A program made the translations under genes and the position numbers. DNA of 64,000 bases, taken from NCBI GenBank assembly GCA_964247055.1, contig OZ176054.1, positions 8,742,001 through 8,806,000 of the forward strand. The letters are read 5' to 3'. This document shows, in pieces, positions 11,093 to 63,545 of the stretch (within the stretch, counting starts at the first letter, position 1; each line of letters opens with the position of its first letter). This stretch comes from Paragordius varius. Lineage: Eukaryota; Animalia; Nematomorpha. The notes under the pieces are model-generated. The model had not been told where the DNA came from and made no database searches. It saw only the letters and a list, made by a program, of their open reading frames with translations.

Positions 11093-11284
11093 TTAATCAA
11101 GCTAAAATTAATATGGTAATACCTTCACAAATCCAATATCATTTGCGTATTGTTTGAAACATTTTCTACACAAATTTAATCCATATTTTCGAATTAATCC
11201 ATGAGGATTTGCGCACGCTCTACATTCTCTCGATCCTTTTCCAAACTTTCTTGGGTGGCTATACCAAATTTTATTTAGTCCCAT
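11093..11284 (-). CDS. RPS29: 40S ribosomal protein S29 (uS14); exons 11284-11123 and 11101-11093; 21-nt intron
   Basis: Translation [54 protein letters not shown]|LD* has the CxxC...CxxC zinc motif and the canonical GFxKLD end. Too short for the ORF track. Confidence 0.96.
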
Positions 11285-20185: not shown

Positions 20186-21190
20186 ATATATAACATTTGC
20201 ATTCCAACAGTGTCCTTGAACACTTCAAAATGGTCCTTGAACATTTCAAGTAGCTACTAACACTTCAAGTTGGTCCTTTAACTATACAATTTGCATGAAG
20301 AGTGTCCTTAAACTATTTCAATTGCTTAAACATTTCGAGTTGGTCCTTAAACGTTACAAGTTGGTCCTTAAAATTTTTAATTTTGGATTTAATCATATTT
20401 TTTAATGGATATTTTTTTGATTTCTAACCTATTTTTATTTATTTATTTTATATTTATTCAATTAAAATAAAATATTTTATCCAAAAACCACATTTAAACT
20501 ATTTTTTCCAATTTAATAAAATCACTAGCTGGCCCTGTCACGCTTCGCTGTGACCTAGACTCATCGATAATTATTCTTAATAATTTGTAATAAATAGAGT
20601 AATGACGATAAAAAAATAATAAAAAACATATTTAATAAAAAGAATGTCTTTAATTAATTCTTTACGGGTTTTTGCATAGGCTCGGATATAGTTTACTCGA
20701 AATTGACCATATTAAGAACTATCCCTTATAAAAGTTTTAAGATTTTCGTTTACGAAATCATGATTAAAATTTTATTTTGAAATTGTGTACACAGCTGGGA
20801 TCAAGGGATATAAAAAGTAAATAATCTGTGGCCCCTTTTTCATGGAAAGAATGATATTATAAAAATTCCCAATTTTTCTATTTTACTTTATTTATTATAT
20901 ATTTATTCATTATCTATAATTTTTCATTCAAAAACTACTATTATGTTTCAAAATTTTTCCAAATCAACAAAATTATAATTTATGAATGTTTTTAATTTCC
21001 ATAACCCATAAGCTATATATTTTTTAATTTACTATATTAATATTAAAAATATTTTTTTAGAAATCAATAAGGATTGACTGTTTCTGAATGAAAGTTGATA
21101 TTGATTCAAACTCTCGCAACATAAAGAGAATAGGTTAAAAACGTACACGGTTTGATTGCTAAAAGTTAAAAACAAATTAAAAACATTTTT
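20186..21190. mobile_element. Degraded foldback element of the ggtccttgaacacttcaagtt family, interrupted by a Helitron; right arm missing
   Basis: Tandem 21-bp units at 20210-20370. The interior is collinear with the 25585-26209 copy on both sides of the 20525 insertion. Confidence 0.65.
20525..20920 (-). mobile_element. Second Helitron-like insertion (3' end clear, 5' end uncertain)
   Basis: The - strand ends in hairpin gtcacagc-gaa-gcgtgac followed by agggccagCTAG|T. The right boundary is inferred from resumption of host foldback sequence; the expected TC start was not found. Confidence 0.55.
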
Positions 21191-21921
21191 ATTTTGTTTT
21201 AATTATATTTTATCGATATCATTTATTTTATTTTTAGTTCATCCATTAAAAAAGATACTGCCATGTATCGAAAATTTTGGATATAATTCAATTTAACCAA
21301 TTTTAAGAAAATTCAATCCATTGAAAAAGATACTACCATGTATCAAAAATTTTGGAAATGTAATTAATTTTACGAGAATTAAAATTATTTTAACTTAAAA
21401 ATAAAAATGTTTATACTCTTTTATATGATGATATTACACGGTTTTCATTATTCTCGACAAATAGTAAAAAATAGAGTTTCATAAAACAAACACAAAATTT
21501 ATGAATTAGATAAAAATATTTTTTCCCCGTCGGTTAATTGAAAACGTTTAAAAAAGGAAAACTACTCATCGTGATATATATAAAATAGCCGACATAATAA
21601 TGGCCGTCCCAAAACAGCAAGCTTTATAAGAACTAGGCGTATAAAAATACAAAATAAGCCAATTGATGTTTAAGCGACAAGCCAATCTGTTTAATTCATT
21701 TTTTTAGTGAAAAGCACCTTTATTTATAAAATAGGGAAATATTAATCAATATTTATGCGTTAAAAGTAAAATTTTTCAACATATTTTCAATTTGAGTTAT
21801 ATTTATGTAGAGCTCCTAAAACCAAGCCACAAAAATGTTAAATTTATTTGATAGATTTTAAAATATAACTATAATGTAAATTTATGTCGAAATATATTGT
21901 GTAATTAACAACTCACACCTA

Positions 21922-21928
21922 TATAAAA
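21922..21928 (+). promoter_or_regulatory. Candidate TATA box for BORCS6
   Basis: cctaTATAAAAgg lies 37-43 nt upstream of the ATG at 21965. In AT-rich DNA, so a chance match is possible. Confidence 0.35.
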
Positions 21929-21964
21929 GGCAACATGCTAATTATCATAAAAAAGTTATAACAT

Positions 21965-22429
21965 ATGGAAGAAAAACACCCTGATGATTTTCCCATAGAT
22001 TTGGAATTTTTAAAGAATTTGGATAATGAAACCCATAAAATATCGGAAGACATAAATAAACTTAATGATATATTAAAGAATGATATAGCCAAAGTAAATT
22101 TATTTTAATCCATAGATAACTAATACAACTCAAGATTCATATCAGGTTTATCATGATGGAGCCGTTGACGCATGTAATTCCATCGACTCTCTATAAAAAC
22201 AATGTATGGAATGATGGCCAAAATGGAGGAATTAACTAAGTCTATGGAACCAATTGGTAGGCTTGCTTTAGAAGCTAAAGAAATTCGTAAAATGATAGAT
22301 TTATGCGAACGTAAATTAAATCAAAAAGAATCGTCAAAAAAAGAGAATAATGATGTCAAAAATGAGGAAACAATATTTCATCCATGCCCAACATTTATTA
22401 ATAAAGAGAGTAAAAATGATAGTGACTAA
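21965..22429 (+). CDS. BORCS6: BLOC-1-related complex subunit 6 (lyspersin, C17orf59/DUF2365); exons 21965-22093 and 22116-22429; 22-nt intron; one apparent 1-nt deletion near 22190
   Basis: Translation ...ISEDINKLNDILKNDIAK|ITNTTQDSYQVYHDGAVDACNSIDS[frameshift]IKTMYGMMAKMEELTKSMEPIGRLALEAKEIRKMIDLCE matches the recalled BORCS6 motif (YRDSVD...VDMSIKGMYTLMARCEELDRSMQPI..LA..IRDIKR.LD). Confidence 0.85.
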
Positions 22430-22430
22430 A

Positions 22431-23009
22431 TTACACTAATGGTTTCCATGGAATAATTATATTTTTGTATATTTCAACTTCCAGTGTTCGCATATTTTTA
22501 TTATTAAACTCCAAACTTGCTTTTTTTATTTTAATTCTATTTGCATTATACATTTCTGGATTGTCAATATTTTGATTAATTATTACATCTATTTCATCAC
22601 CATCACACACCTATAAGTCAAAATTAATAATACTTCATAAGCCTTTTTGTTTGCGATAGATTCATTTACTAAAATTTTAGCTTCCAAATATTTATCATCT
22701 ACTTTTCTAATTTATTAACATATTTAAACTTTTTTGAAATTTCCAAACATTGCTTGATTATACCATCCAACCTTAAATTATGAACTTGAAGTTGTTTTTG
22801 AACTATAGTATCTATTTCATTTTCATCATCATCTACTATATCGTTTTTTTCTACCTATAAAATAATTTATATATTACCATTTTTTTCTTTTGACGATAAA
22901 TTATAGGGGTTTGGTTATAAGGCTGCAAAATATATCTACTATTTATCGAGCTAGTAAAAAAATAATTATGGTTTGATCGTAGGAGTTTAAAGAAATTTAA
23001 AAAATGCAT
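22431..23009 (-). CDS. MTRES1: Mitochondrial transcription rescue factor 1-like S4-domain protein (169 aa); exons 23009-22878, 22854-22730, 22706-22634, 22610-22431; three 23-nt introns
   Basis: The spliced ORF is open from ATG to TAA. It has a presequence-like N-terminus, an acidic patch, then VHNLRLDGIIKQCLEISKKKVDDKYLEAKILVNESIANKKAYEVCDGDEIDVII, which aligns without gaps to the recalled MTRES1/C6orf203 S4-like core (VQSFRYDVVLKTGLDIGRNKVEDAFY...LNEEKLWKKSRTVKVGDTLDLLI). Confidence 0.82.
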
Positions 23010-23062: not shown

Positions 23063-23230
23063 AAACATTTGGATACAACACATTCATTTTAGTACTTCGA
23101 TTCAAATGGGGGTAGTTAAATACCTCAGGCCTGTTATATTAAATTCGTTAAAAAATATGGAAGGAATCAAAACCATAGAATAATTTTGCACATATAACAT
23201 TTAAACCGAAATATATAAAAAAAAATTAAA
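23063..23230 (-). mobile_element. Partial TTAA-MITE (right end only)
   Basis: ttaaacatttggatacaacacattcattttagtacttcgattcaaatgggggtag is the reverse complement of the family right end. Confidence 0.75.
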
Positions 23231-23234
23231 GCTT

Positions 23235-24032
23235 ATTTAATGCTAAAAGCGAAAGTTGCTGACGATACTATACTGCTGTCAAATTCAGTGAACAACCTAA
23301 AAAAACTCTTAACAAAAATTTTAAATGAATGTCATAAATTTGGACTGACGATCAACTTAAAAAAACTAAAATTATGATTATAAACGCTCCCACTATAACA
23401 ACTTATCCTTTGACAACCAAAAATAAGTAGTCTCCCAATACACTTAATTAGGCATTCTTATAAATACGACTAACAGCACCCCCGACATCAGAAGAAGAAT
23501 AGGAATTGCTAAGACAAAAATGATAAAATATAATACACTATGGTCGTCACACGACATCAAACTCAAAACAAAAATCCGATTAGTTAAATCCCTAATATTT
23601 CCTAGCATGCTATACGCGTCAGAAAGTTGGAAAATAAAAAAGAATAACGAAAAATACATTAACGCCTTCGAAATGTGGTGTGGCGGAAGATACGTCAAAT
23701 CACTTGGAAAGACAAAATAAAGAACTTCGTAATCCTTGACAAAATAAATCCCGAGATACACCTGATTAGCATGTGCCTCAAAATAAAATTATCATACTTT
23801 GATCACATTACCAAAGCTAATGACTTGGAATTCCAACTTATGACAGGCAAGGTCGAATGATCCAGGAAACATGGACGCTGCAAGATGCGCTGGATCGAAA
23901 ACCTAACCAAAGATACCAATCTCTCTTTACAACAGCTAACATCACTTGCTTACAATCGAATAAACTGGAGAAAATATACCTTCGAAAAAGCAATAAATCG
24001 ACAACGATCTTTGCTATAATAATAATAATAAA
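23235..24032 (+). mobile_element. 5'-truncated RTE-like non-LTR retrotransposon remnant with (TAA)n tail
   Basis: RT motifs across frameshifts: ADDTILL, GLTINLKKTK, DIRRRIGIAK, KTKIRLVKSLIFPSMLYASESW, AFEMWC. Ends ctataataataataataaaat. Confidence 0.85.
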
Positions 24033-24036
24033 ATAG

Positions 24037-24557
24037 CCCAGACTATATTTAAATTTATATTTTTTAAACAATGGTCCCAATTTAAATTTATGCTTCCATC
24101 CTAATCAAAATTATATAAATAAGCCGAAATATCTAAATAAATTTGGTTTAGAAAAAAAATCCATATCAAACTACGTCGACGGCATTATTTTACATTTTTG
24201 CAAAATATCATGTTTATTTAATTTAAAATCTAAAATAAAACCTAATTTTTCATTTAAATCACATCTAACATTGATAGAAAAAGAAAAAATGGTTTATTTT
24301 TTATAATTTTAAAATTTAGCTTATTCATATATGTCCTGTTGACTAAATTTTTACCTTGAGGGTTTATCTAAAAATAATTATTATCAAGTATTTTTAAATA
24401 AATTCTCATATATTTCGGTTCATTAATTGTGCAAATTTTTGCCAAGGTTTTAATTCATTCCATATTTTTGAATTATTTAATTTTAAACAGGCCTGGGGTA
24501 ACCAACTACCCCAATTTGAATCAAAGGACTAAAATGAATGTGTTGTATCCATGTGTT
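24037..24557 (+). mobile_element. TTAA-MITE copy lacking its first ~30 bp
   Basis: Collinear with 11531-12112. Ends tgttgtatccatgtg|TTAA. Confidence 0.8.
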
Positions 24558-25584
24558 AAGCGCCAACCATATAATACCGACAAATATTGCATATGTTTTA
24601 ACATCTATTTATTATTCTAAATCACAAAATGCTTTTGCGGATCTGATATAAATTGCAGGTAAAATGGCTAATGCAATTTAGTATAAAAGAGAGAATATTT
24701 TTAAAAACTCTAATTTACAATCCCATATATTTATTTTATTTTAAATCTGATTTATCAGGATATCATCTGAAAAGATCTTTTCATATGTATCTTAACTTCA
24801 TTCTCTTTTGGGTAGTTATATACCCATAACTATCTAAATGATTATAACTATGTAAAGGTGCCAAATTTAAAAATATGTTCTTTAGTTTTTTAGCTGCATT
24901 CTTTAAAACTTTTTCAAAAATTTTATAATTGTAAAGTAATCCGATCTCAAACTTTTATGCCATCTAATTTGCATTTTATTCGCTATCAACAAGCAATTAA
25001 ATGTATATTATGAAAAATGTAAATAATTAACCCATTCAAATGGCATTGTGTTAAAATTTTTTTGATATTTATTGATTTCATAATCAGCTGTTTGTTTCAA
25101 ATTGTGTCTTGGAGTCATCAATGTTATAATATTCTGGAGTTTAACCAAAACTTTTAAAACAATAGTTTATTTACAAATATCTTTGTGGTATACTAGTCCA
25201 ATATATAATTGTTGCTAAAATAATTAAAAGGTAAAGAGTTAAACATTTATTTTATAATATGCCGACTAGCATGTCTTTTAAGGAAAACAGTAAAGATAAC
25301 TTGCTAAATATATTTGGCACATCTTGCCAATTCTTAATATACCATTTTGTGAGTTTCTTTTAATGGTTTCTGAGGAATCTTATAAAATCAAAATTCTCTA
25401 AGAAGATGTGCCCAATAAAAACCGAATTGCAATAATTGCTAAATATATTGTATATATATATGTCATAAATTCAGCAAGGTTCAAGTCCTTTTTAATATTA
25501 AGGCCAGGTAAGTTTTTTAAAAAAATAAATTATTTTGATTCCATATAGAATATATCACAAATATTTTGTCACTATCATTTTATA

Positions 25585-52800: not shown

Positions 52801-55800
52801 AACATATTTGAATGTCTAAGCAATGCTAATCATTAATGAAATTTTAAACTCAAAAAAGAGTATAAATCACAAAATAGTATCCTAGTCTTTCTCAAATGTG
52901 TCCATTAAAATTAAGTAAAAAATATGCGTCTGGCTCCATTAATTGAAGCATATCAGAATTTTTTAAAGATAAAAGCTTTTTAAGATGTTTTATTTACAGA
53001 CCTATTTGTAATGAGGGAGTGCTTTCACAAATATATGCAATGGGCACCACATATGCTCACTTAGCAAAGTGCTCATTAACATACATTTAATTTATCTAAT
53101 ATATATTTAACAGTATTAGCTTTTAGTTTAAACAAAAATGATGGTCTTATGAGCCGATTGCGATTCGTTAATTACACACATACAATGTGTTACTATTTTT
53201 AAGTTTTAGCTTAATGAAATATGCCTTCCATCATAATAATATCAAATCAATTTTTTGTTTGATACGGAAATCCTTTACCAAATACTTAAATTTAAAGTAA
53301 TAGAATTTTATATGAATTACTTTTGGTAGATTGTTCATATGTTAGGATATATTTAAATACTGCCTTAGATTGCTAGCTTAGCTGAACAAATTAATAATTT
53401 TATAACATTAAAACCATATTATGATATTTTATGTGACATATTTATGAAAGATTAATAATTTACTTTTGAATATTCCTCTCGGTTAAAAAAATTTTTCTCA
53501 TAGATGTTGGAAATGGCGGATGGCATAAAATCTTCAACAGCGCGAGCACAATACTTAATATCCATATCATCCCATCTAACTTTGGTGAAGTATTTTAACA
53601 TTTTACGCTTCAAATCTTTAATATCTTCAGGCATGTATTGTACATAATGATCCACCACACCATATAAGAAATAATCATTTAACATTCTATTATAAATAAA
53701 CGGTAAAACATGACAGAAAACAGATTTTAAAATTTTTTGAGTTAATTCACAAAAGATAATAATATACTAATGTCCTATATTCTAAAAATTTTGAAATATC
53801 ATTTGACATTATTTTATCAAAAAATAAATAACTATTTATTAAATATACATTCTGCTACTTGTTTAACGGTTAAAACCAGGAGTGTCCAACAAGCGGTCCA
53901 AGGGCCTTATGCAGGCCACCAAAATATCGGCAGCACTCCAGATATTTCAAATACAAAATTTTACGAAAACTAAGTAACCGATTTTCTAACAAATACTCTA
54001 AAAAATATTTACGAATTTTGGCAATGAACTAGAAAAAATGTTAAAATACATAAAATTTATACAGTCTTATAAATCTAATAAAATATTTGTTCAACACCTA
54101 TATATTATGCGGCGGCCCGCCAGGATTTTGATCTGAAAATGCAACCTGCGAAGTCATTTTTGGGCACTGCTGGTTAAAACTAAATAAATTTTTTATGATT
54201 TTTATTATGTGTAATAAAATAACAATTTATAATATATATATAAAAAATATATTTAATAATTTTCATTGAAGCTAATGCGCGCAAAAGAAATTCGGAATTC
54301 AACCTTTTCTACATAAATGATGTATTACTTCCTTAGAGTTGTGAACCACAAATTTAAACTACAATATTTTTAATTTTAGTATATATATTGTTTAAACGGT
54401 CTAGCTTAAGAAAATATTTGTATTATAAAGAAGTCCTAAATCAATAGGATAGAAAAAATAACGAGTAGTCAAAATTGTTGTTATACAATAATATTTGTTT
54501 TTCTCCAAAGGATGCAGCCCAATTATTTAGAAAAGAGCGTTTATTTGATTTGCAGGGGCATAGTAAAGAGGAATGGAAGGGACTTATATATGCCCACGGC
54601 GCCAAAATTTGAGGGGCGTTGAAATAAGATTTTTAATTTAAAAAATATATGTACCGAGCGCCGCGAATTCTCCTTACTTCACTCTTGATTAGCAGGCATT
54701 TGGGTTATAGTATTAATATTTTTAAGTACCTTGAAAATGTTGGCTTGGATTTAGCGAATTTCAAAAATCGATGCAATCCATCCATGTAAGCCATGTCTTC
54801 GAGGATTATCATATTTTTATGCATGTTAACATTGTATTTGCCGAAAACATCATTGAAATATTCTCTCCATTTTATCTAAAAGTATTATTTTTTTTAAGAT
54901 TTTATTTTTCGAAATTTTTTTATAAACGTTAAAATATTTAATATTTTTATGGTTTCAATATATGAGACCATATATAAGATTATTGAAAATCTTAATTAGT
55001 TTTAATGAGTTTTCCTATATTTCACCTGATAAAATAAATAAAATACCGTGGTATAGAAAATATCCATCGTTTTTATCTGATATGGAATATATTCGTATTG
55101 ATCAGTCGTGGCTCTAGCTTCTTCGTAGATCTAACGGGAAAATTATTGTTTATTCATAAAGTAAAATATCTATTGAAAGGCATTTTTATTTTACACACGA
55201 AATTCAAATTGTAATAATGAATAAACTAATTAATATATTGTATGATATAGTATTATTCATATGCTCTGGATACGTTCCTAATTTATTTTATTAGCAATAT
55301 ATTTTAATTATTAAATTTTATTTGCAATCAACCGCACTTTATTCAAAAAACATTTATTTATGAAAGGCCAAATATTTTAGTGATATTTCTACCAACTTTT
55401 GTTCATACCTTAGCCAATTCACTTTCGACTTCGAAAATGCCCTCGACCGTATCCTCATCATAACCAAAAAAGGTGTTCATAACAGCATTCATATATTTCT
55501 TGTACTCAGTCATGAGTCCTTCATCATCATAATAGCTGGCAAATTTTAGCCGAGGTGTAGCCATGGTTAAAAGTATCATATGATCATTACCTTCTAAATG
55601 ATTGTAACGGATATCTATGTTGAATAGCGGATTGGTAGGGTGTAGTTCTGTAAGGAGTCGTTGAAAGTTCCAATCATTCATAAGGGCATTCATTGATCTA
55701 TCGAATTCCTCCGTATTACCAGATATGATAGTATCTTGCAGCGGTTTCCAATCAGTGGTGTATAAAATTTTTCGAAGCCAAAACTCCCGCAACTCGGGCG

Positions 55801-58338
55801 TTAGATGCTTCGATGAACGACGAGCCATACAAGAATCATAAAATCGCTTGGCTTTCCTTTCGAATTCGTATTTAAATGGGTAGCTATCATCTAACAATAA
55901 TAATATCAGTCAATATAAAAATTAAAAATTAAGCCAAAGCCCACTTGCAAATATTCTCACATCATTTCTAAAAATCGACACATTTTACAAACTCTTATTA
56001 GAAAAAACAAAGAGGGTGATTCTATAGATAACACATTAGTTAAACGTGAAAAAATGACAAGGGAATAAATGGAATTAAAAGCAATAGTGAACCTTATATA
56101 TGGAAAAATAAAAATGGCAAATATAGGTTACCCGAGCCACTTAGTGTATTAAAACAAATTAATAATATATAGACAATCCATTATTTTTACAAAGTTATTT
56201 GTTCAGTTTATTGGCTCTTTTATTTTTATTAGTGATCACTTTTAATAATGTTTACTGTAATGTAGCATCGATAATAAAAATTAAGACAAGCTTTAAATAT
56301 ACTTCAGGGTGGAACTACGAAAGAAACCGGTTTCGTTGGATAGGAATCACCCGATTCCGGTTCTAAAATATTAGAAACCAGCCCCGTTCCGGTATAATTT
56401 AAATTTGATTATACGATAACATTATTTCTGGTTTCCCATCAAAATGGAATTTGTTAATTTTTAAAAATTATCATATGATAACAATTTTTCGTATCGATGG
56501 AAATGGAATTACCATAACAATTTTTAAATAATTCCTTTATACTTAACGAGATATATCCAATTATTTTCTAGATTTTTGCAATCGATAGATTATGACCATT
56601 TACCTTAATGAGAAATAACTTTCAAAACCATAAGTTTTATAATGGAGTCTCATAAGTTGGGAAAGGGAAAATCAGATAAATTTATTCAAATTAGGCTTTC
56701 TTTTATTTTTTACTTTAAAAATTTTAAAGTAACATCTACCTTAAAGTAAATTATTAATTAAAAAAAATATGCTTTGATTTACGATCGTTCATATTTTGGT
56801 TAATGTTATTATAATAAAAATTTTATATGAATATTTAATCAATAGTCAGAAACCGAAATGGAACCGGTTTCGAAACCAATTCCGCTTGTCGGAAGTCAGG
56901 CCGGTTTTGGTTTTTATTTTTTCGGTGCGTTTGGAAGCCTTACATATTTAAATTCAACGAGGAGTTTGATTACAAAAATGTTTGATGATCAACTTAATCT
57001 TCATTGGTAACGTTTTGTATAATTTTTCTCCCAACTAATGTGTTAGATTTTAAAACTATACTTTATGAAAATTACAACCGTAGTGAAAGTTGTATTTACG
57101 CGATAAAAATAAATATAGTAAAATATTATAGGTATATTTTTACTTTTATTACGCTATATAATGTTTGACGAAACAGGAAATATTATATCTTGTTATAGTT
57201 GTGTGACCTTTAATGCTTTTATCAAATATTTATTCAGCAATTGCTAATATTAATCGCATTAAAACATTTTTAACACATTGCATAATTACGAATGTTTTTT
57301 GTATATACAATGTCATACAAAAAGGCTGATAACTTATAAATGTACAAAATTACAATACCCCTCTTTCCGCCCTGGTGAGAAACATATTTAATTTGAAACG
57401 ATTGCAATCTTAACAAAGGAAAGTCCATGATAAAAGCATTATTAGAGACGCTGTTTATTTGAAAAGTCTTTCATATTATTACTGTTTCTCATATTACAAT
57501 GCAACGTATATCATAAAAATATTTAAATAAGGTGAAAAAATCCAGGTATTTTAATTGAAATTTTTTAAAAATTATTAAAATTTACTCTTTATGCATAATT
57601 TTTAGTCGATTAGGATTAAATTTGGTTTTAATAAGTAAATTAATCAAACTGATATTGTCACAATCAAACTATAAATGTAGCCACTCTTTAGCTAATTTTG
57701 GCCTTAAATGTATAATAGTTAGTTAAAATTTGAAATTTTTTTTGTAATTTTATGAATTGATTTAAAAGCCATTCAATTACGTATTTTTGCAAAAGTAATT
57801 TGGGCACATAATATGTCAAGGAGGGTAAATTTAAAAACAATCAAACAAAATGTCATAAAATTTTACAATCATTGTGGCTTATTAGTATTAAATTGCAAAA
57901 GTTAATTAAGTAAGAAAATTTTATACCTTATTTTACCTGTAAGTAGGGTAAGTTAACAAAACACACATTTATTTTTAGCAATCTAAAAAATTTGAAATCT
58001 TATAAACACACAACAAAAGCAACTAGAAAATTAATACATATCTTTGATGAAAAGTATATTTGCGTTGATTAGCCTAAATAAAGGATTTTAATATTCAGCC
58101 CCAAAAGATGTATTTTAAATATACTTACTTAACAATTTATACAAGTCATAGGCGTTGGCTAAATTAACGTTTTCTATGGTAGAAAAATATTGGGCTGACT
58201 GAGTGAGATTATGTTTGTAGGAGTCCTCCAAACCACCACAAGCATAATTGAAGAAATCATTACACGGTGATTCTGAAGACTTAATACCAGAAAGGAGGAG
58301 TTCTTTCGAACTTATACGATACGGATTGTTACCATAAA
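45908..58338 (-). CDS. M13 family zinc metalloendopeptidase (neprilysin/ECE-like), 15 exons identified, N-terminal exon unresolved
   Basis: Phase-consistent GT-AG exons: 58338-58129, 55890-55409, 55130-55047, 54875-54730, 53686-53464, 52753-52655, 52489-52412, 52315-52212, 51802-51741, 51647-51596, 51417-51350, 48317-48196, 48079-48017, 46444-46349, 46078-45908 (2060 nt). Motifs SPCNDFFNYACG, KAKRFYDSCM, ANAQY, PAGL, NYGGIGATIAHEIMHSLD, ENVADN, QLYFVSYAQ, HPPSKFRILG and CDAW*. Confidence 0.93.
48568..51205 (-). mobile_element. GTF2IRD2-like hAT transposon, copy 2, in the M13 intron following the HExxH exon
   Basis: Same TIRs as 27642-30639, with identical 8-bp TSD gtttaata. Collinear decayed transposase and an ~88-bp tandem array at ~50634-50950. 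Confidence 0.92.
49824..49862. repeat. (TA)n microsatellite inside the transposase reading frame
   Basis: t(at)19 here versus t(at)5 at 29299-29309 in copy 1. Confidence 0.95.
53877..54172. mobile_element. 296-bp hAT MITE in an M13 intron
   Basis: TIRs caggagtgtccaa / ttgggcactgctg with identical 8-bp TSD gttaaaac. Confidence 0.85.
56305..56940. mobile_element. Degenerate element related to the GGAACCGG-motif family
   Basis: Clusters of aaccgg/ccggtt motifs at ~56320-56395 and ~56850-56910. TIR and TSD are not convincing. Confidence 0.4.
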
Positions 58339-59429: not shown

Positions 59430-62400
59430 ATACTAATAATTTGAACAATTCAAAAACAATTTATTGTTATATATCATGAAAAATGATTGTTTATATAGAT
59501 TATTTTCATCGATTCGTGGGACAGAACACGGAAATGAATATAATATTATTGTAATGCATTTAAGTATAAAACAATTTGTTGAAACATGACGCATGAGTTA
59601 TTTGAAATGTTATTTATAAAACAATTCATCGAATCATGATGACGCACGTGTCAAATGTTATTGTGTAATAAAAAAGTGCACAAATATTATAACATATCAT
59701 TTCCCCTCGCTTTAGGAAAATCGATCAGGGGCTTTACGTTCTCTGAGAGGATAACGTCTTTCTTGTCTTTCAGAAGTTGTTTTCGGCTCATTAACTACAT
59801 CCGCTGCATCTGTGATTTTTTCTGGTAAATTACTGTCAAGTGGGACCTCAACCGACTTTTTCAATTATTCTGTTTTCGTTGAATTTTATTACCACATCTG
59901 TCTGGTAGGATAACAATCTAGTTCTATCAATAACTTTCCCTTTCTTCCATCCCATTGATGTTTCATTTTTTATTAAAATCGGTTCACAACTGACAAATTC
60001 CCGCAAAGGAGCATTGGTACTATAATCAGTGAAATCTGATTGTACGGTTTGTAACCACGATAAAGGAGTACAAATCTCTCTTTTTTGTAATGAACAAGGG
60101 GTTACCTTGGTGGCACTATGAATTGCTATTCGATAACTCCATAGAATAGTGTTTATAGTTTCTTGCGGATGCAAGTCAGCACGCTTTGTAGCTTTGTATT
60201 TGGTTTTAAGAGTATAAATTGATCGCTCCACCAAGCCATTCGTACGAGGATGATAAGGACTAGACGTGACATATTTAATATTTAAATGTTTTAATCTGTC
60301 CTCAAATTCGTAAGAAACAAAATATGTTGCATTGTCGCTTACTAATATTTTGGGAAAACCAAATCTAGCAAACAATTTTTCTAAACACTCTAAAATTGCC
60401 TTGCTTGTGACTTGTTTTATTGAATCAACTTCCACCCATCAAAAGCTGTCAATTGTTACTAACCAGTAAAACCCATCAATAGGACCTGCAATATCAATAT
60501 GAATTCTTTCCCATATGGCGGTATTGAAATTCCATTTGTACGTAGGGTTTACCTGGATGTTGGGCTTATACCTTTGAAATTCGTCACATGTTTAAGCAAA
60601 TAATTTTTTGGTCCAAATTCGGCCAATATACAGTGTGACGCGCGAGGGATTTCATGGTATTTATCCCCGGGTGCCCAGTATGAAGAAAATCAAGAATTTC
60701 TGTTTGCAATGAATTGGGAACTACTAGTCTGTCTTCCAAATAAACTAAGCCATATGATGTTTGAAGAAAGTTTCGAGGTGATTGGTAATCTTTAGGATCT
60801 GGATCATCCCAATTGTTGGAATTTAATGCAATTTTTAATTTTGGAATAATAGAATCCTTGTTACATAGGTTAATAACATGCTTTTTATTGATGTTAAAAT
60901 TGCTCATCGATAAAAACCGAATTTTTTTAGCTACTATATCATCATCGTCTACTTCGGAATCTGATTTTATTGCTAATCTAGATAAAGGGTTGGCTAAATT
61001 CTGAACTCCTTTATTAAATTCAATTGTGTAATCATAGCCCGATATTTTATAGATCCATCGTAGTAATTTTATGTTGGTTACCCCGGCTAAATTTCTATTT
61101 TCCCCAACTAATTTAATCAAGGGTTTGTGATCCGTCAAATAAATGATCTTCCATATATGAAAGAATGGAATTTTTGCACAGCGAATAAAATCGCTTTTGC
61201 TTCCCTTTCAATGGTAGAATAATGTTTTTCAAAATTTAAACATTTTATTGATGCGTAACAAATGGGTCGTTTGCCTTCATCTGTTACGTGGAATAGAATA
61301 GCTCCTAAACCTTCCATCGAAGCATCAGTTTCTATTAATAATGTCCCGGATTATATGGAATCAATTCTACAAAGTTAGATATTAGTTGTTTCGATAGCGA
61401 AAATTGTTTATCATGTATGTCCTCCCATTTCCAGGGCTTTTTGTTTCCAGTCAATGTGTGTAAAGCACTAATGACTGGATGTAATCTGGGTATGAATTTC
61501 TCATGAAAGCTTAGTAATCCCAAATAAAAACGTAATGTTGTTTTATCCTTAGGAACCGGGCAGTCTAAAATTGATTTGATTTTCTTATTTGTGGGTCTAA
61601 TACCCTTTCGAGATATTTCGTAGCCCATGTAGAATACTTTTTCCTTAAAAATTTTTATTTTATCTAGTTGCAAGCGGAATCCGGCATGTTCAAGTTTTTT
61701 TCAAAACAAGCTCAAGATTTGCTTTGTGTTGCATATCTGTATCGCCCGTTATTAAAACGTCATCTAGGTATGCACATCCTGGGCAATCATCCAGAATTTG
61801 ATCCATAATACGTTAATATCATCGGAGTATTTGTAAGCCCAAACGGTAGTCGTCTATAAGTAAAGTAGGCTCTGTGTGTAGTAATCGTTAGAATATCAGA
61901 GCTTTCCTTAGCAACAGGTAGCTGTAAGTAAGCATCCCTGAGATCTAAAACTGAGAATGAATGTCCATTTCCAATTTTACTCAATAGTTGATCAAATGTC
62001 GGAATTATATGGGAATCTTTGGATAAATATGGATTTATCGTTACACGATAATCAGCGCAAATGCGAACTTCCCCATTGGATTTCAAAACGTTGACAGTTG
62101 GTTGACCAACAAATTGGAGTTGTTGTTGGATCAACTGGTTCTATAATTGCTAAATCTAACAATCCGTCTAATTCGTTTTCTACCAATGGTTGTAATGAAA
62201 GAGGAACTCTTCGGCAAGGAAAACATTTTGGTTTTGCATCCGGAATCAGAAAGATTTTAATTGGATTTCCGTTGAAACAACCAAGTTCATTTGAAAGTTT
62301 TGGAAATCTGTTAATCAGATCCATATTATCATAATCAAAATTAATATTATAATTAACCTTTTGGAAATGGCAAATTGTAAGCTTTTATCCATGGTAATCC

Positions 62401-63545
62401 AAAAATCGGATCGAAATATCCTTTTGTAACGACACATGGTAAAGTTATTTGTTTGTGAAACGTCACATTAACCATCTCCCCATAATGGGAATCTTATTAT
62501 TGTCATATGTGGTAATTTGATCGGACCACGTTAATTTGGGACAACCAATCTGCCTCCATATTTGTTGATTTATGAACAGTCAGAAGTGTCGAAAAACCAT
62601 AATTCTAGGGGTAGTGCCCGCTTTTATAGATCTAATTTGATCTAAATTTCTTACCAACTTTGTTTTGCACATTGAACTAAAGTGGTTAAAGTTGTTATAT
62701 TTGTAACAATTTTCCAAGCAGGGCATTTGTTCTTTAGAGACAATTCACAATTGGGACAATTAATTTTGTCATTATTATTGTACTTTTCCTTTTTATTATT
62801 ATGATCTTTGCTGACCTTTACTTTATTCACAGTGGCTGATAAATTCTCAGCTTCCTCAAAACTGAGGGTAGGTCAACTAACATTTGTAAAGTTAATGGTG
62901 TTTCACCCATTTTGCCTAAGGGATATAACGTGTAGCTCTCTTTCCAATCTTGGTTAGTTGAATGAGGCCTACAATAAACATAACTCTTATCTTGTTGGAA
63001 ATATCAGAATCAAAACCTGCATTATCAGCTAGGATTTTTAATCTTTCCAAATACGACAAAAACGGTTCATTTTCCCCTCGACGAATACGATAAAATTCGG
63101 ACCGGTTAATCCATAAGCTTTTATCCGGCGCATATATCTGGACCGCTATTTTAAAGATCTCTGGCCATTCTAGAGCATCTATGTTGTCCGGATATAATAT
63201 GTTTTCAATTTTGTTCAAAATTTTTATTCCACCAAATGCAAGGAACAATTTTTTCACGGCATCATTAGTGATCGGTATGTCTCTGGCTAGTGAAAGCAGG
63301 ATTGGCACCCACACATAATTGGTATGTCTCATCAACAAAAAGAAACGTTCGATGTGCTTGACGTAATTTTTGAAATTCAATGATTCATCAAAAGGCTCCA
63401 GAACTATCCGATTTATGGGGTTTTGTGCATTATTAAATGTGAATTTGGAATCTTCCATGTAAGGAATAATTTTCCTCGTCGCCAATAATATTTTGAACAA
63501 TACAAAAACAATTTATTGTTATACAGTAGCGTATGCAGTAAAAGA
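59430..63545 (-). mobile_element. Ty3/Gypsy LTR retrotransposon (Mag/K02A2.6-like), degenerate
   Basis: Order on the - strand: PBS-like TGGCGACGAGG (63484-63474); gag from ATG 63458 with a decayed Cys knuckle near 62680-62760; protease remnant; RT (ICADYR, LDLRDAY, YLDD, FYMGY); RNase H (EREAKAI, TDHKPL); integrase (HTGHPG, HIDIAGP, VSDNA, HPRTNGLVER); PPT aaagcgaggggaaa followed by TG at 59699. Many stops and frameshifts. Confidence 0.92.

Follow-up and report, generated by a model that had tools for sequence, protein, structure and literature searches.

The window analysed here, a stretch of 64,000 nucleotides, carries on its minus strand a MTRES1-like gene whose coding sequence is interrupted by three GT..AG segments of 23 nt each (22877-22855, 22729-22707 and 22633-22611). 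Removing the three segments joins four exons into a CDS of 510 nt, comprising 169 codons and a TAA stop. Exon 1 (22878..23009) is 132 nt long and holds 44 codons, beginning with the ATG at 23009-23007 and ending on a second ATG; it is followed in phase 0 by intron 1 (22855..22877, 23 nt), which starts GTAATA, ends TATAG, is 91% A+T and has an A at position 15. Exon 2 (22730..22854, 125 nt) encodes an acidic linker and then the start of the MTRES1_C, or S4-like, domain with its RLD motif. Intron 2 (22707..22729, 23 nt), in phase 2, runs from GTTTAA to ATTAG and has the element TTAAT at positions 12-16. Exon 3 (22634..22706, 73 nt) encodes the middle part of the S4-like core and leads in phase 0 into intron 3 (22611..22633, 23 nt), which starts GTATTA, ends TATAG and has TTGAC at positions 13-17, with the A at position 16. 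Exon 4 (22431..22610) is 180 nt long including the TAA stop at 22433-22431, and contributes a GDEIDV motif together with the C-terminal half of MTRES1_C. The coordinates, ends and frame of the three segments, and the single 169-aa ORF that their removal leaves, are those of the initial annotation. Its claim that retention of any single intron breaks the frame is likewise borne out by translation, which reaches a stop codon within about 10 codons when intron 1 or intron 2 is kept and within 15 codons when intron 3 is kept. The adjoining BORCS6 gene lies on the plus strand and is convergent with the MTRES1-like gene on the minus strand; a single base separates its TAA (22427-22429) from that of the MTRES1-like gene (22433-22431), and the 3' UTRs of the two genes must therefore overlap in antisense.

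Without splicing, the longest ATG-initiated ORF at the MTRES1-like locus is 52 aa. In dinucleotide-preserving shuffles (n=300) with up to three GT..AG removals, the best ORF did not exceed 96 aa when only 23-nt removals were allowed, or 121 aa when removals of 20-26 nt were allowed, compared with 169 aa in the real sequence. Because the G+C content of the window is only 28%, long open frames are very unlikely to arise in it by chance. A loose search of the real window, with removals of 18-30 nt and up to four of them, returned many spurious spliced ORFs of at least 100 aa, most of them in transposon debris. The stitching of open frames was rejected as a stand-alone criterion, since under such loose rules it is too permissive and produces many false ORFs in the real window. 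A dynamic-programming search further showed that a different third intron of 20 nt, at 22608-22589, likewise keeps the frame open, over about 169-170 aa. As this alternative stays open, the ORF criterion alone cannot fix the position of intron 3, and homology decides the matter.

The domain match was assessed with a 63-aa stretch that spans junctions 2 and 3 of the spliced product. This stretch matches the Pfam family PF25818 (MTRES1_C) with 41.3 bits against a cutoff of 27 and an E-value of 2.2e-10, and its residues 3-62 fall on profile positions 6-65, an equal count of 60 on either side and hence no net gap. Its best match in the PDB is human MTRES1 (7a5h_G, residues 139-195, E 4.1e-4), with which 57 aligned residues pair gap-free and the GD.ID motif is matched to human GDTLD. 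The MTRES1-like identity given in the initial annotation, and the gap-free S4-like core which it expected once intron 2 is removed, thus hold against both the curated profile and the human protein. Exon 4 by itself aligns over residues 4-54 with positions 53-102 of the 103 in PF25818 at a sub-threshold E-value of 0.044, and the joined exons span positions 6-102 of the profile. Exons 1, 2 and 3, each taken singly, gave no MTRES1_C match in searches of Pfam, the PDB and the Atlas. The generic S4 RNA-binding domain PF01479 stayed below its gathering score (16.2 versus 22.8 bits) and aligned over profile positions 27-48 only, so that the specific MTRES1_C model fits far better. A search of exon 4 against a library of protein representatives, in which the query gene is itself absent, returned 0 matches, and a search for homologous proteins with the 63-aa domain stretch returned none.

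These alignments bear on each junction separately. The Pfam alignment is colinear across the junction of intron 2 under both models of intron 3, and intron 2 is therefore supported whichever of the two is used. In the rival model the gene is real and spliced, and its third intron is the 20-nt segment 22608-22589, so that in the product ...AYEVLLILTYRYVIIN... replaces ...AYEVCDGDEIDVIIN.... This model offers an open frame of about equal length (169-170 aa), and 20 nt falls inside the range of intron lengths proposed for the genome. Its product scores 26.2 bits, however, in an alignment that ends at profile position 50, which is the junction itself, as against 41.3 bits and an alignment that runs on to position 65; it would also delete the GD.ID motif that pairs with human GDTLD, and the segment begins GTGTGA and ends AATAG, without the combination of GTA start and TAG end that we associate with the five supported introns of the window described below. 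The segment 22633-22611 is preferred as intron 3 because it scores 15 bits better and keeps the GD.ID motif, and we regard the 20-nt model as very improbable. Intron 1 falls in a non-conserved region of the protein, where the frame and the RNA provide the evidence.

Taken as a sequence match, the alignment across junctions 2 and 3 supports the assignment of the predicted product to the MTRES1-type S4-like RNA-binding proteins. The resemblance to human MTRES1 (C6orf203; 7a5h chain G) consists of the gap-free S4-like domain. The human protein is longer, at 240 aa compared with 169 aa, and the N-terminal region of the MTRES1-like product, which is basic and free of acidic residues, has no detectable similarity to it. 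A composition count of the exon 1 product finds 7 K+R, 0 D+E and 6 S+T in 44 aa, and this basic N-terminal stretch is likely to be a mitochondrial presequence, through which the product would be targeted to the mitochondrion. In human mitochondria, stalled large ribosomal subunits carry MTRES1 together with mtRF-R. By analogy, the product most likely has the role of its human counterpart, that of an RNA-binding factor of the S4-like type on stalled large subunits in the mitochondrion, and a function of the MTRES1 type is consistent with a lineage that retains its mitochondrial genome.

The 23-nt segments are present in the DNA of several samples and are not an assembly artefact, since DNA-like contigs from three runs carry them. 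The depth of runs X1, X2 and X4 is even, at about 350-840 (2-20 in X2), as expected of whole-genome DNA. Record 7 of X1 covers 22638-22805, including intron 2, with 0 gaps and 0 mismatches; record 21 of X2 covers 22329-22720, including intron 3, with one extra letter somewhere within that span; and record 28 of X4 is colinear over 22508-22897, through all three introns. Indels in the DNA that would open the frame without splicing, which the initial annotation had named as an outcome that would count against it, were not encountered; the DNA contigs carry the segments. Polymorphisms of the CDS in the DNA runs comprise one synonymous change (22542, in exon 4) and three conservative ones (V/I, G/S and I/V), and two expressed alleles of exon 1 (records 11 and 12 of run X14, described below) differ in the presequence region (22875-22983) by an in-frame indel of 3 nt. 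Among the X1 DNA contigs listed, there is a break between 22624 and 22638. A length polymorphism of intron 3, of 23 or 24 nt and located in its 5' half, is possible; an allele of 24 nt, if true, would keep the frame on retention.

Runs X2, X6 and X7, which carry the labels of three other organisms and come from other studies, also hold the locus, and the copy in X2 has roughly 98-99% identity and only a low depth (2-6x). A parasite inside host samples would give such a pattern, as would mislabelled or mixed material. The flanks at 20500-21400 and 23067-24576 consist of very high-copy repeats, with a summed word depth of 0.2-2.3 million versus about 350-840 for single-copy sequence, which fits a highly repetitive genome.

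Run X14 shares its sample with the DNA-like run X4 and has zero depth between genes; its library type is not on record, and from the coverage pattern we infer that it is an RNA library. Two allelic X14 contigs (11 and 12, of 116 and 113 letters) match the window over 22983-22875 and then end in unmatched letters, which are given by number (7). As intron 1 and exon 2 both begin GTA, spliced RNA is expected to match as far as 22875 and to diverge there; the divergence at this position fits the splicing of intron 1, where unspliced RNA would go on matching. The X14 depth is 0 over 22463-22764, and no X14 contig lies on 22431-22874, although such holes prove nothing; direct RNA coverage at junctions 2 and 3 is thus nil. 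The MTRES1-like transcript is present in X14 at a depth similar to that of BORCS6.

A second micro-intron lies in BORCS6 itself, on the plus strand at 22094-22115. It is 22 nt long with GT..AG ends and is present in the X4 DNA and absent from X14. The junction formed by its removal is colinear with the Pfam profile, positions 3-34 preceding it and positions 37-61 following it. The corresponding X14 contig has 413 letters on 21937-22370 (434 nt), with 23 gap positions. The depth of X14 is 168.9 in the bin 21859-22009 (349.4 x 73/151) and 349.4 in the bin that follows the second; in the bin 22010-22160 it is 298.5, which equals 349.4 x 129/151, and X4 is flat there at 351.3. The reduction to 129/151 means that exactly 22 nt are missing from the bin that holds the predicted BORCS6 intron, with the gap placed to within that 151-nt bin. 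This 22-nt intron is the best-supported micro-intron in the window.

The BORCS6 frame is broken further downstream, at 22178-22193 (plus strand), where the Pfam alignment runs through positions 37-61 up to 22190 and then continues through positions 62-100 in the +1 frame. One added base near 22191-22193 would rejoin the two frames. Besides the 22-nt skip, the X14 contig of BORCS6 has exactly one extra letter, somewhere within 21937-22370. The pattern suggests a 1-nt deletion in the window, of assembly or allelic origin, rather than a broken BORCS6 gene.

A third gene with an intron of this kind is RPS29, in which 21 nt with GT..AG ends (11102-11122, minus strand) lie just ahead of the last two codons. 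Removal of this intron changes the end of the protein from ...GFVKVLPY* to the canonical ...GFVKLD*, and the upstream exon (54 aa) is 76-78% identical to arthropod RPS29 (insect, mite and horseshoe crab). The proposal in the initial annotation that the genome has a class of micro-introns is strengthened by these two genes, BORCS6 (22 nt) and RPS29 (21 nt), which carry introns of the same kind, and by the presence of the BORCS6 segment in X4 and its absence from X14.

The five introns (three in the MTRES1-like gene, one each in BORCS6 and RPS29) were compared with a background of 647 GT..AG 21-23-mers in the window. For patterns that were chosen after looking at the introns, a TAG 3' end occurs in 5/5 (background 0.34) and a GTA 5' start in 4/5 (background 0.31); three of the five, which are 23, 22 and 21 nt long, have TTAAT at positions 12-16 (background 0.014), and the remaining two have ATTAT and TTGAC at that place. 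All five are rich in A+T (81-91%). They appear to share a yUnAy-like element; its A, a putative branch point, is the 15th or 16th base of the intron and precedes the AG by 6-9 nt. Rfam and tRNA scans of the window returned no match of any kind, and thus no snRNA genes.

A rival view would make the MTRES1-like locus a pseudogene in decay, or a product of indel errors in the assembly, with the three 23-nt introns as a coincidental stitching of frames. In its favour, the window is AT-rich and rich in transposons, loose stitching makes many false ORFs in it, and the adjoining BORCS6 gene, as read in the window, is off frame by 1 nt. Against this, the shuffles never came near 169 aa; two of the junctions are colinear and gap-free both with human MTRES1 and with a curated profile; independent DNA-like contigs match the window across the segments; the RNA-like run contains the transcript, covered about as deeply as BORCS6; the polymorphisms are synonymous, conservative or in-frame; and the segments match the RNA-supported BORCS6 intron in length and in their end motifs. 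We consider this explanation very improbable, slightly more so than the 20-nt model of intron 3. That the segments are kept in the mRNA and bypassed by programmed frameshifting, translational bypass or RNA editing has nothing specific in its favour beyond junctions 2 and 3 being simply without direct RNA evidence, and is extremely unlikely, given that translation into a retained intron 1 or 2 meets a stop in about 10 codons or fewer, that GT..AG ends and a branch-like element are what splicing predicts, that the RNA-like contigs diverge at the donor of intron 1 and that the BORCS6 contig is without its 22 nt. We therefore conclude, with high confidence, that the MTRES1-like locus is an intact, expressed nuclear gene with three genuine spliceosomal GT-AG introns of 23 nt, all of which have to be removed for the 169-aa frame to be read. 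The partial RNA support and the identification of the gene as MTRES1 are what is new here.

Longer introns are present in the same window. Two exons of a neprilysin-like M13 peptidase lie on the minus strand at 55406-55897 and 53455-53685, and correspond to positions 56-195 and 266-337 of the Peptidase_M13_N profile, respectively; a search for homologous proteins with an M13 exon found nothing. Between the two exons lie 1.7 kb of sequence, and about 70 positions of the profile are unaccounted for; at least one further exon, together with ordinary introns, must therefore lie in that 1.7 kb. It follows from this spacing that introns of several hundred bases or more coexist with the micro-introns. 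The initial annotation had placed introns of 3-13 kb alongside the micro-introns; the coexistence itself stands, and it stands for introns of several hundred bases or more, as given by the M13 exons. The window also contains the remains of an LTR retrotransposon at 59851-63500 (minus strand), in which an rve integrase core, an integrase H2C2 zinc-binding domain and a weak Gag p24 match lie in successive ORFs.

Our analysis suggests a model for the removal of these introns. The micro-introns would be part of a genome-wide class of 21-26 nt, usually with a GTA 5' end, a TAG 3' end and a yUnAy-like element, and introns 2 and 3 of the MTRES1-like gene would be removed from the RNA as intron 1 and the BORCS6 intron appear to be. 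Removal would be carried out by the ordinary U2-type spliceosome, as has been proposed for other micro-intron lineages; these lineages keep U2 and U2AF, according to the recent myxobolid study (PMC13644364). In this model, GTA is all that would be left of the 5' splice site, the A at position 15-16 may serve as the branch point, and the acceptor would be the first TAG 6-9 nt downstream of this A. As 23 is not a multiple of three, a retained copy brings a premature stop, and errors of splicing would thus be visible to quality control. We think it somewhat more probable than the contrary that the genome represents a third, independent animal lineage, an ecdysozoan one and probably that of a horsehair worm, with obligatory introns of 21-26 nt, in which, unlike in dicyemids and myxobolids, the same spliceosome also takes ordinary and multi-kilobase introns in neighbouring genes and measures the short ones by a ruler from the 5' end, with the branch A always at 15-16 and the first TAG at 6-9 nt beyond it.

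Should the genome prove to be that of a horsehair worm, it would bring an ecdysozoan lineage into the micro-intron group, one with introns of 21-26 nt beside normal and long ones. It would then provide a natural system in which one spliceosome recognizes both extremes, and in which the minimum distance between branch point and 5' splice site, and the role of length as a signal, could be studied. Standard gene finders and read mappers usually set the minimum intron at 20-30 nt or more. Genes such as the MTRES1-like gene will be broken by annotation because these settings are too high, and short-intron genes broken in this way may contribute to the gene losses and low BUSCO scores that are reported for such genomes.

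To our knowledge, it was for a long time assumed that animals cannot have introns shorter than 30 nt. Such introns have been published for Dicyema (PMC6736024) and, by Hadjez et al. in September 2026 (Mol Biol Evol, PMC13644364), for myxobolid myxozoans; the survey of 51 animal genomes in the latter study gave no case beyond dicyemids and myxobolids. The initial annotation had cited dicyemids as animals with introns this short, which remains correct, and the myxobolids have to be added to its account (PMC13644364). Our literature search, which was incomplete, found no report of such introns in Nematomorpha; the kind of element is thus known, and the lineage appears to be new for it. The genome looks ecdysozoan.

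A close likeness to what is seen here is found in the myxobolids. According to the study of these animals (PMC13644364), the median intron is 27 bp in Henneguya salminicola and 22 bp in Thelohanellus kitauei and Myxobolus rasmusseni, and these are parasitic animals with GT-AG introns of about 20-27 nt, a 5' signal cut to GTa and no polypyrimidine tract. The conserved A residues of myxobolids and Dicyema lie farther from the AG in longer introns, according to that study, and the pattern in our small sample matches this, as TTAAT keeps positions 12-16 whether the intron is 21, 22 or 23 nt long. The two cases differ in that RPS29 here is 76-78% identical to arthropod sequences, which does not look like a fast-evolving cnidarian parasite, and in that the short introns of H. 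salminicola have short neighbours, whereas the same window here holds introns of at least several hundred bases. Other myxozoans, represented by the Kudoa assemblies, have longer introns, and an initial assignment of the genome to dicyemids or myxozoans was dropped. Dicyema japonicum, likewise a parasitic animal, has a genome rich in repeats, introns below 30 nt and a mean intron of 38 bp (Lu et al. 2019, PMC6736024); its GC content is 36.7% compared with 28% in the window, and dicyemids are fast-evolving spiralians, whereas the best RPS29 matches here are arthropod. Ciliates, a very distant lineage, resemble the present case in their narrow intron lengths (about 25 nt in Paramecium and 15-16 nt in Stentor, as cited in PMC13644364) and in the way that lengths which are not multiples of three, or in-frame stops, reveal retention; they are without long introns alongside. 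In base composition and repeats, the likeness is with the horsehair worm Gordionus montsenyensis, the genome of which has 26.9% GC and a high repeat content, close to the 28% GC of the window.
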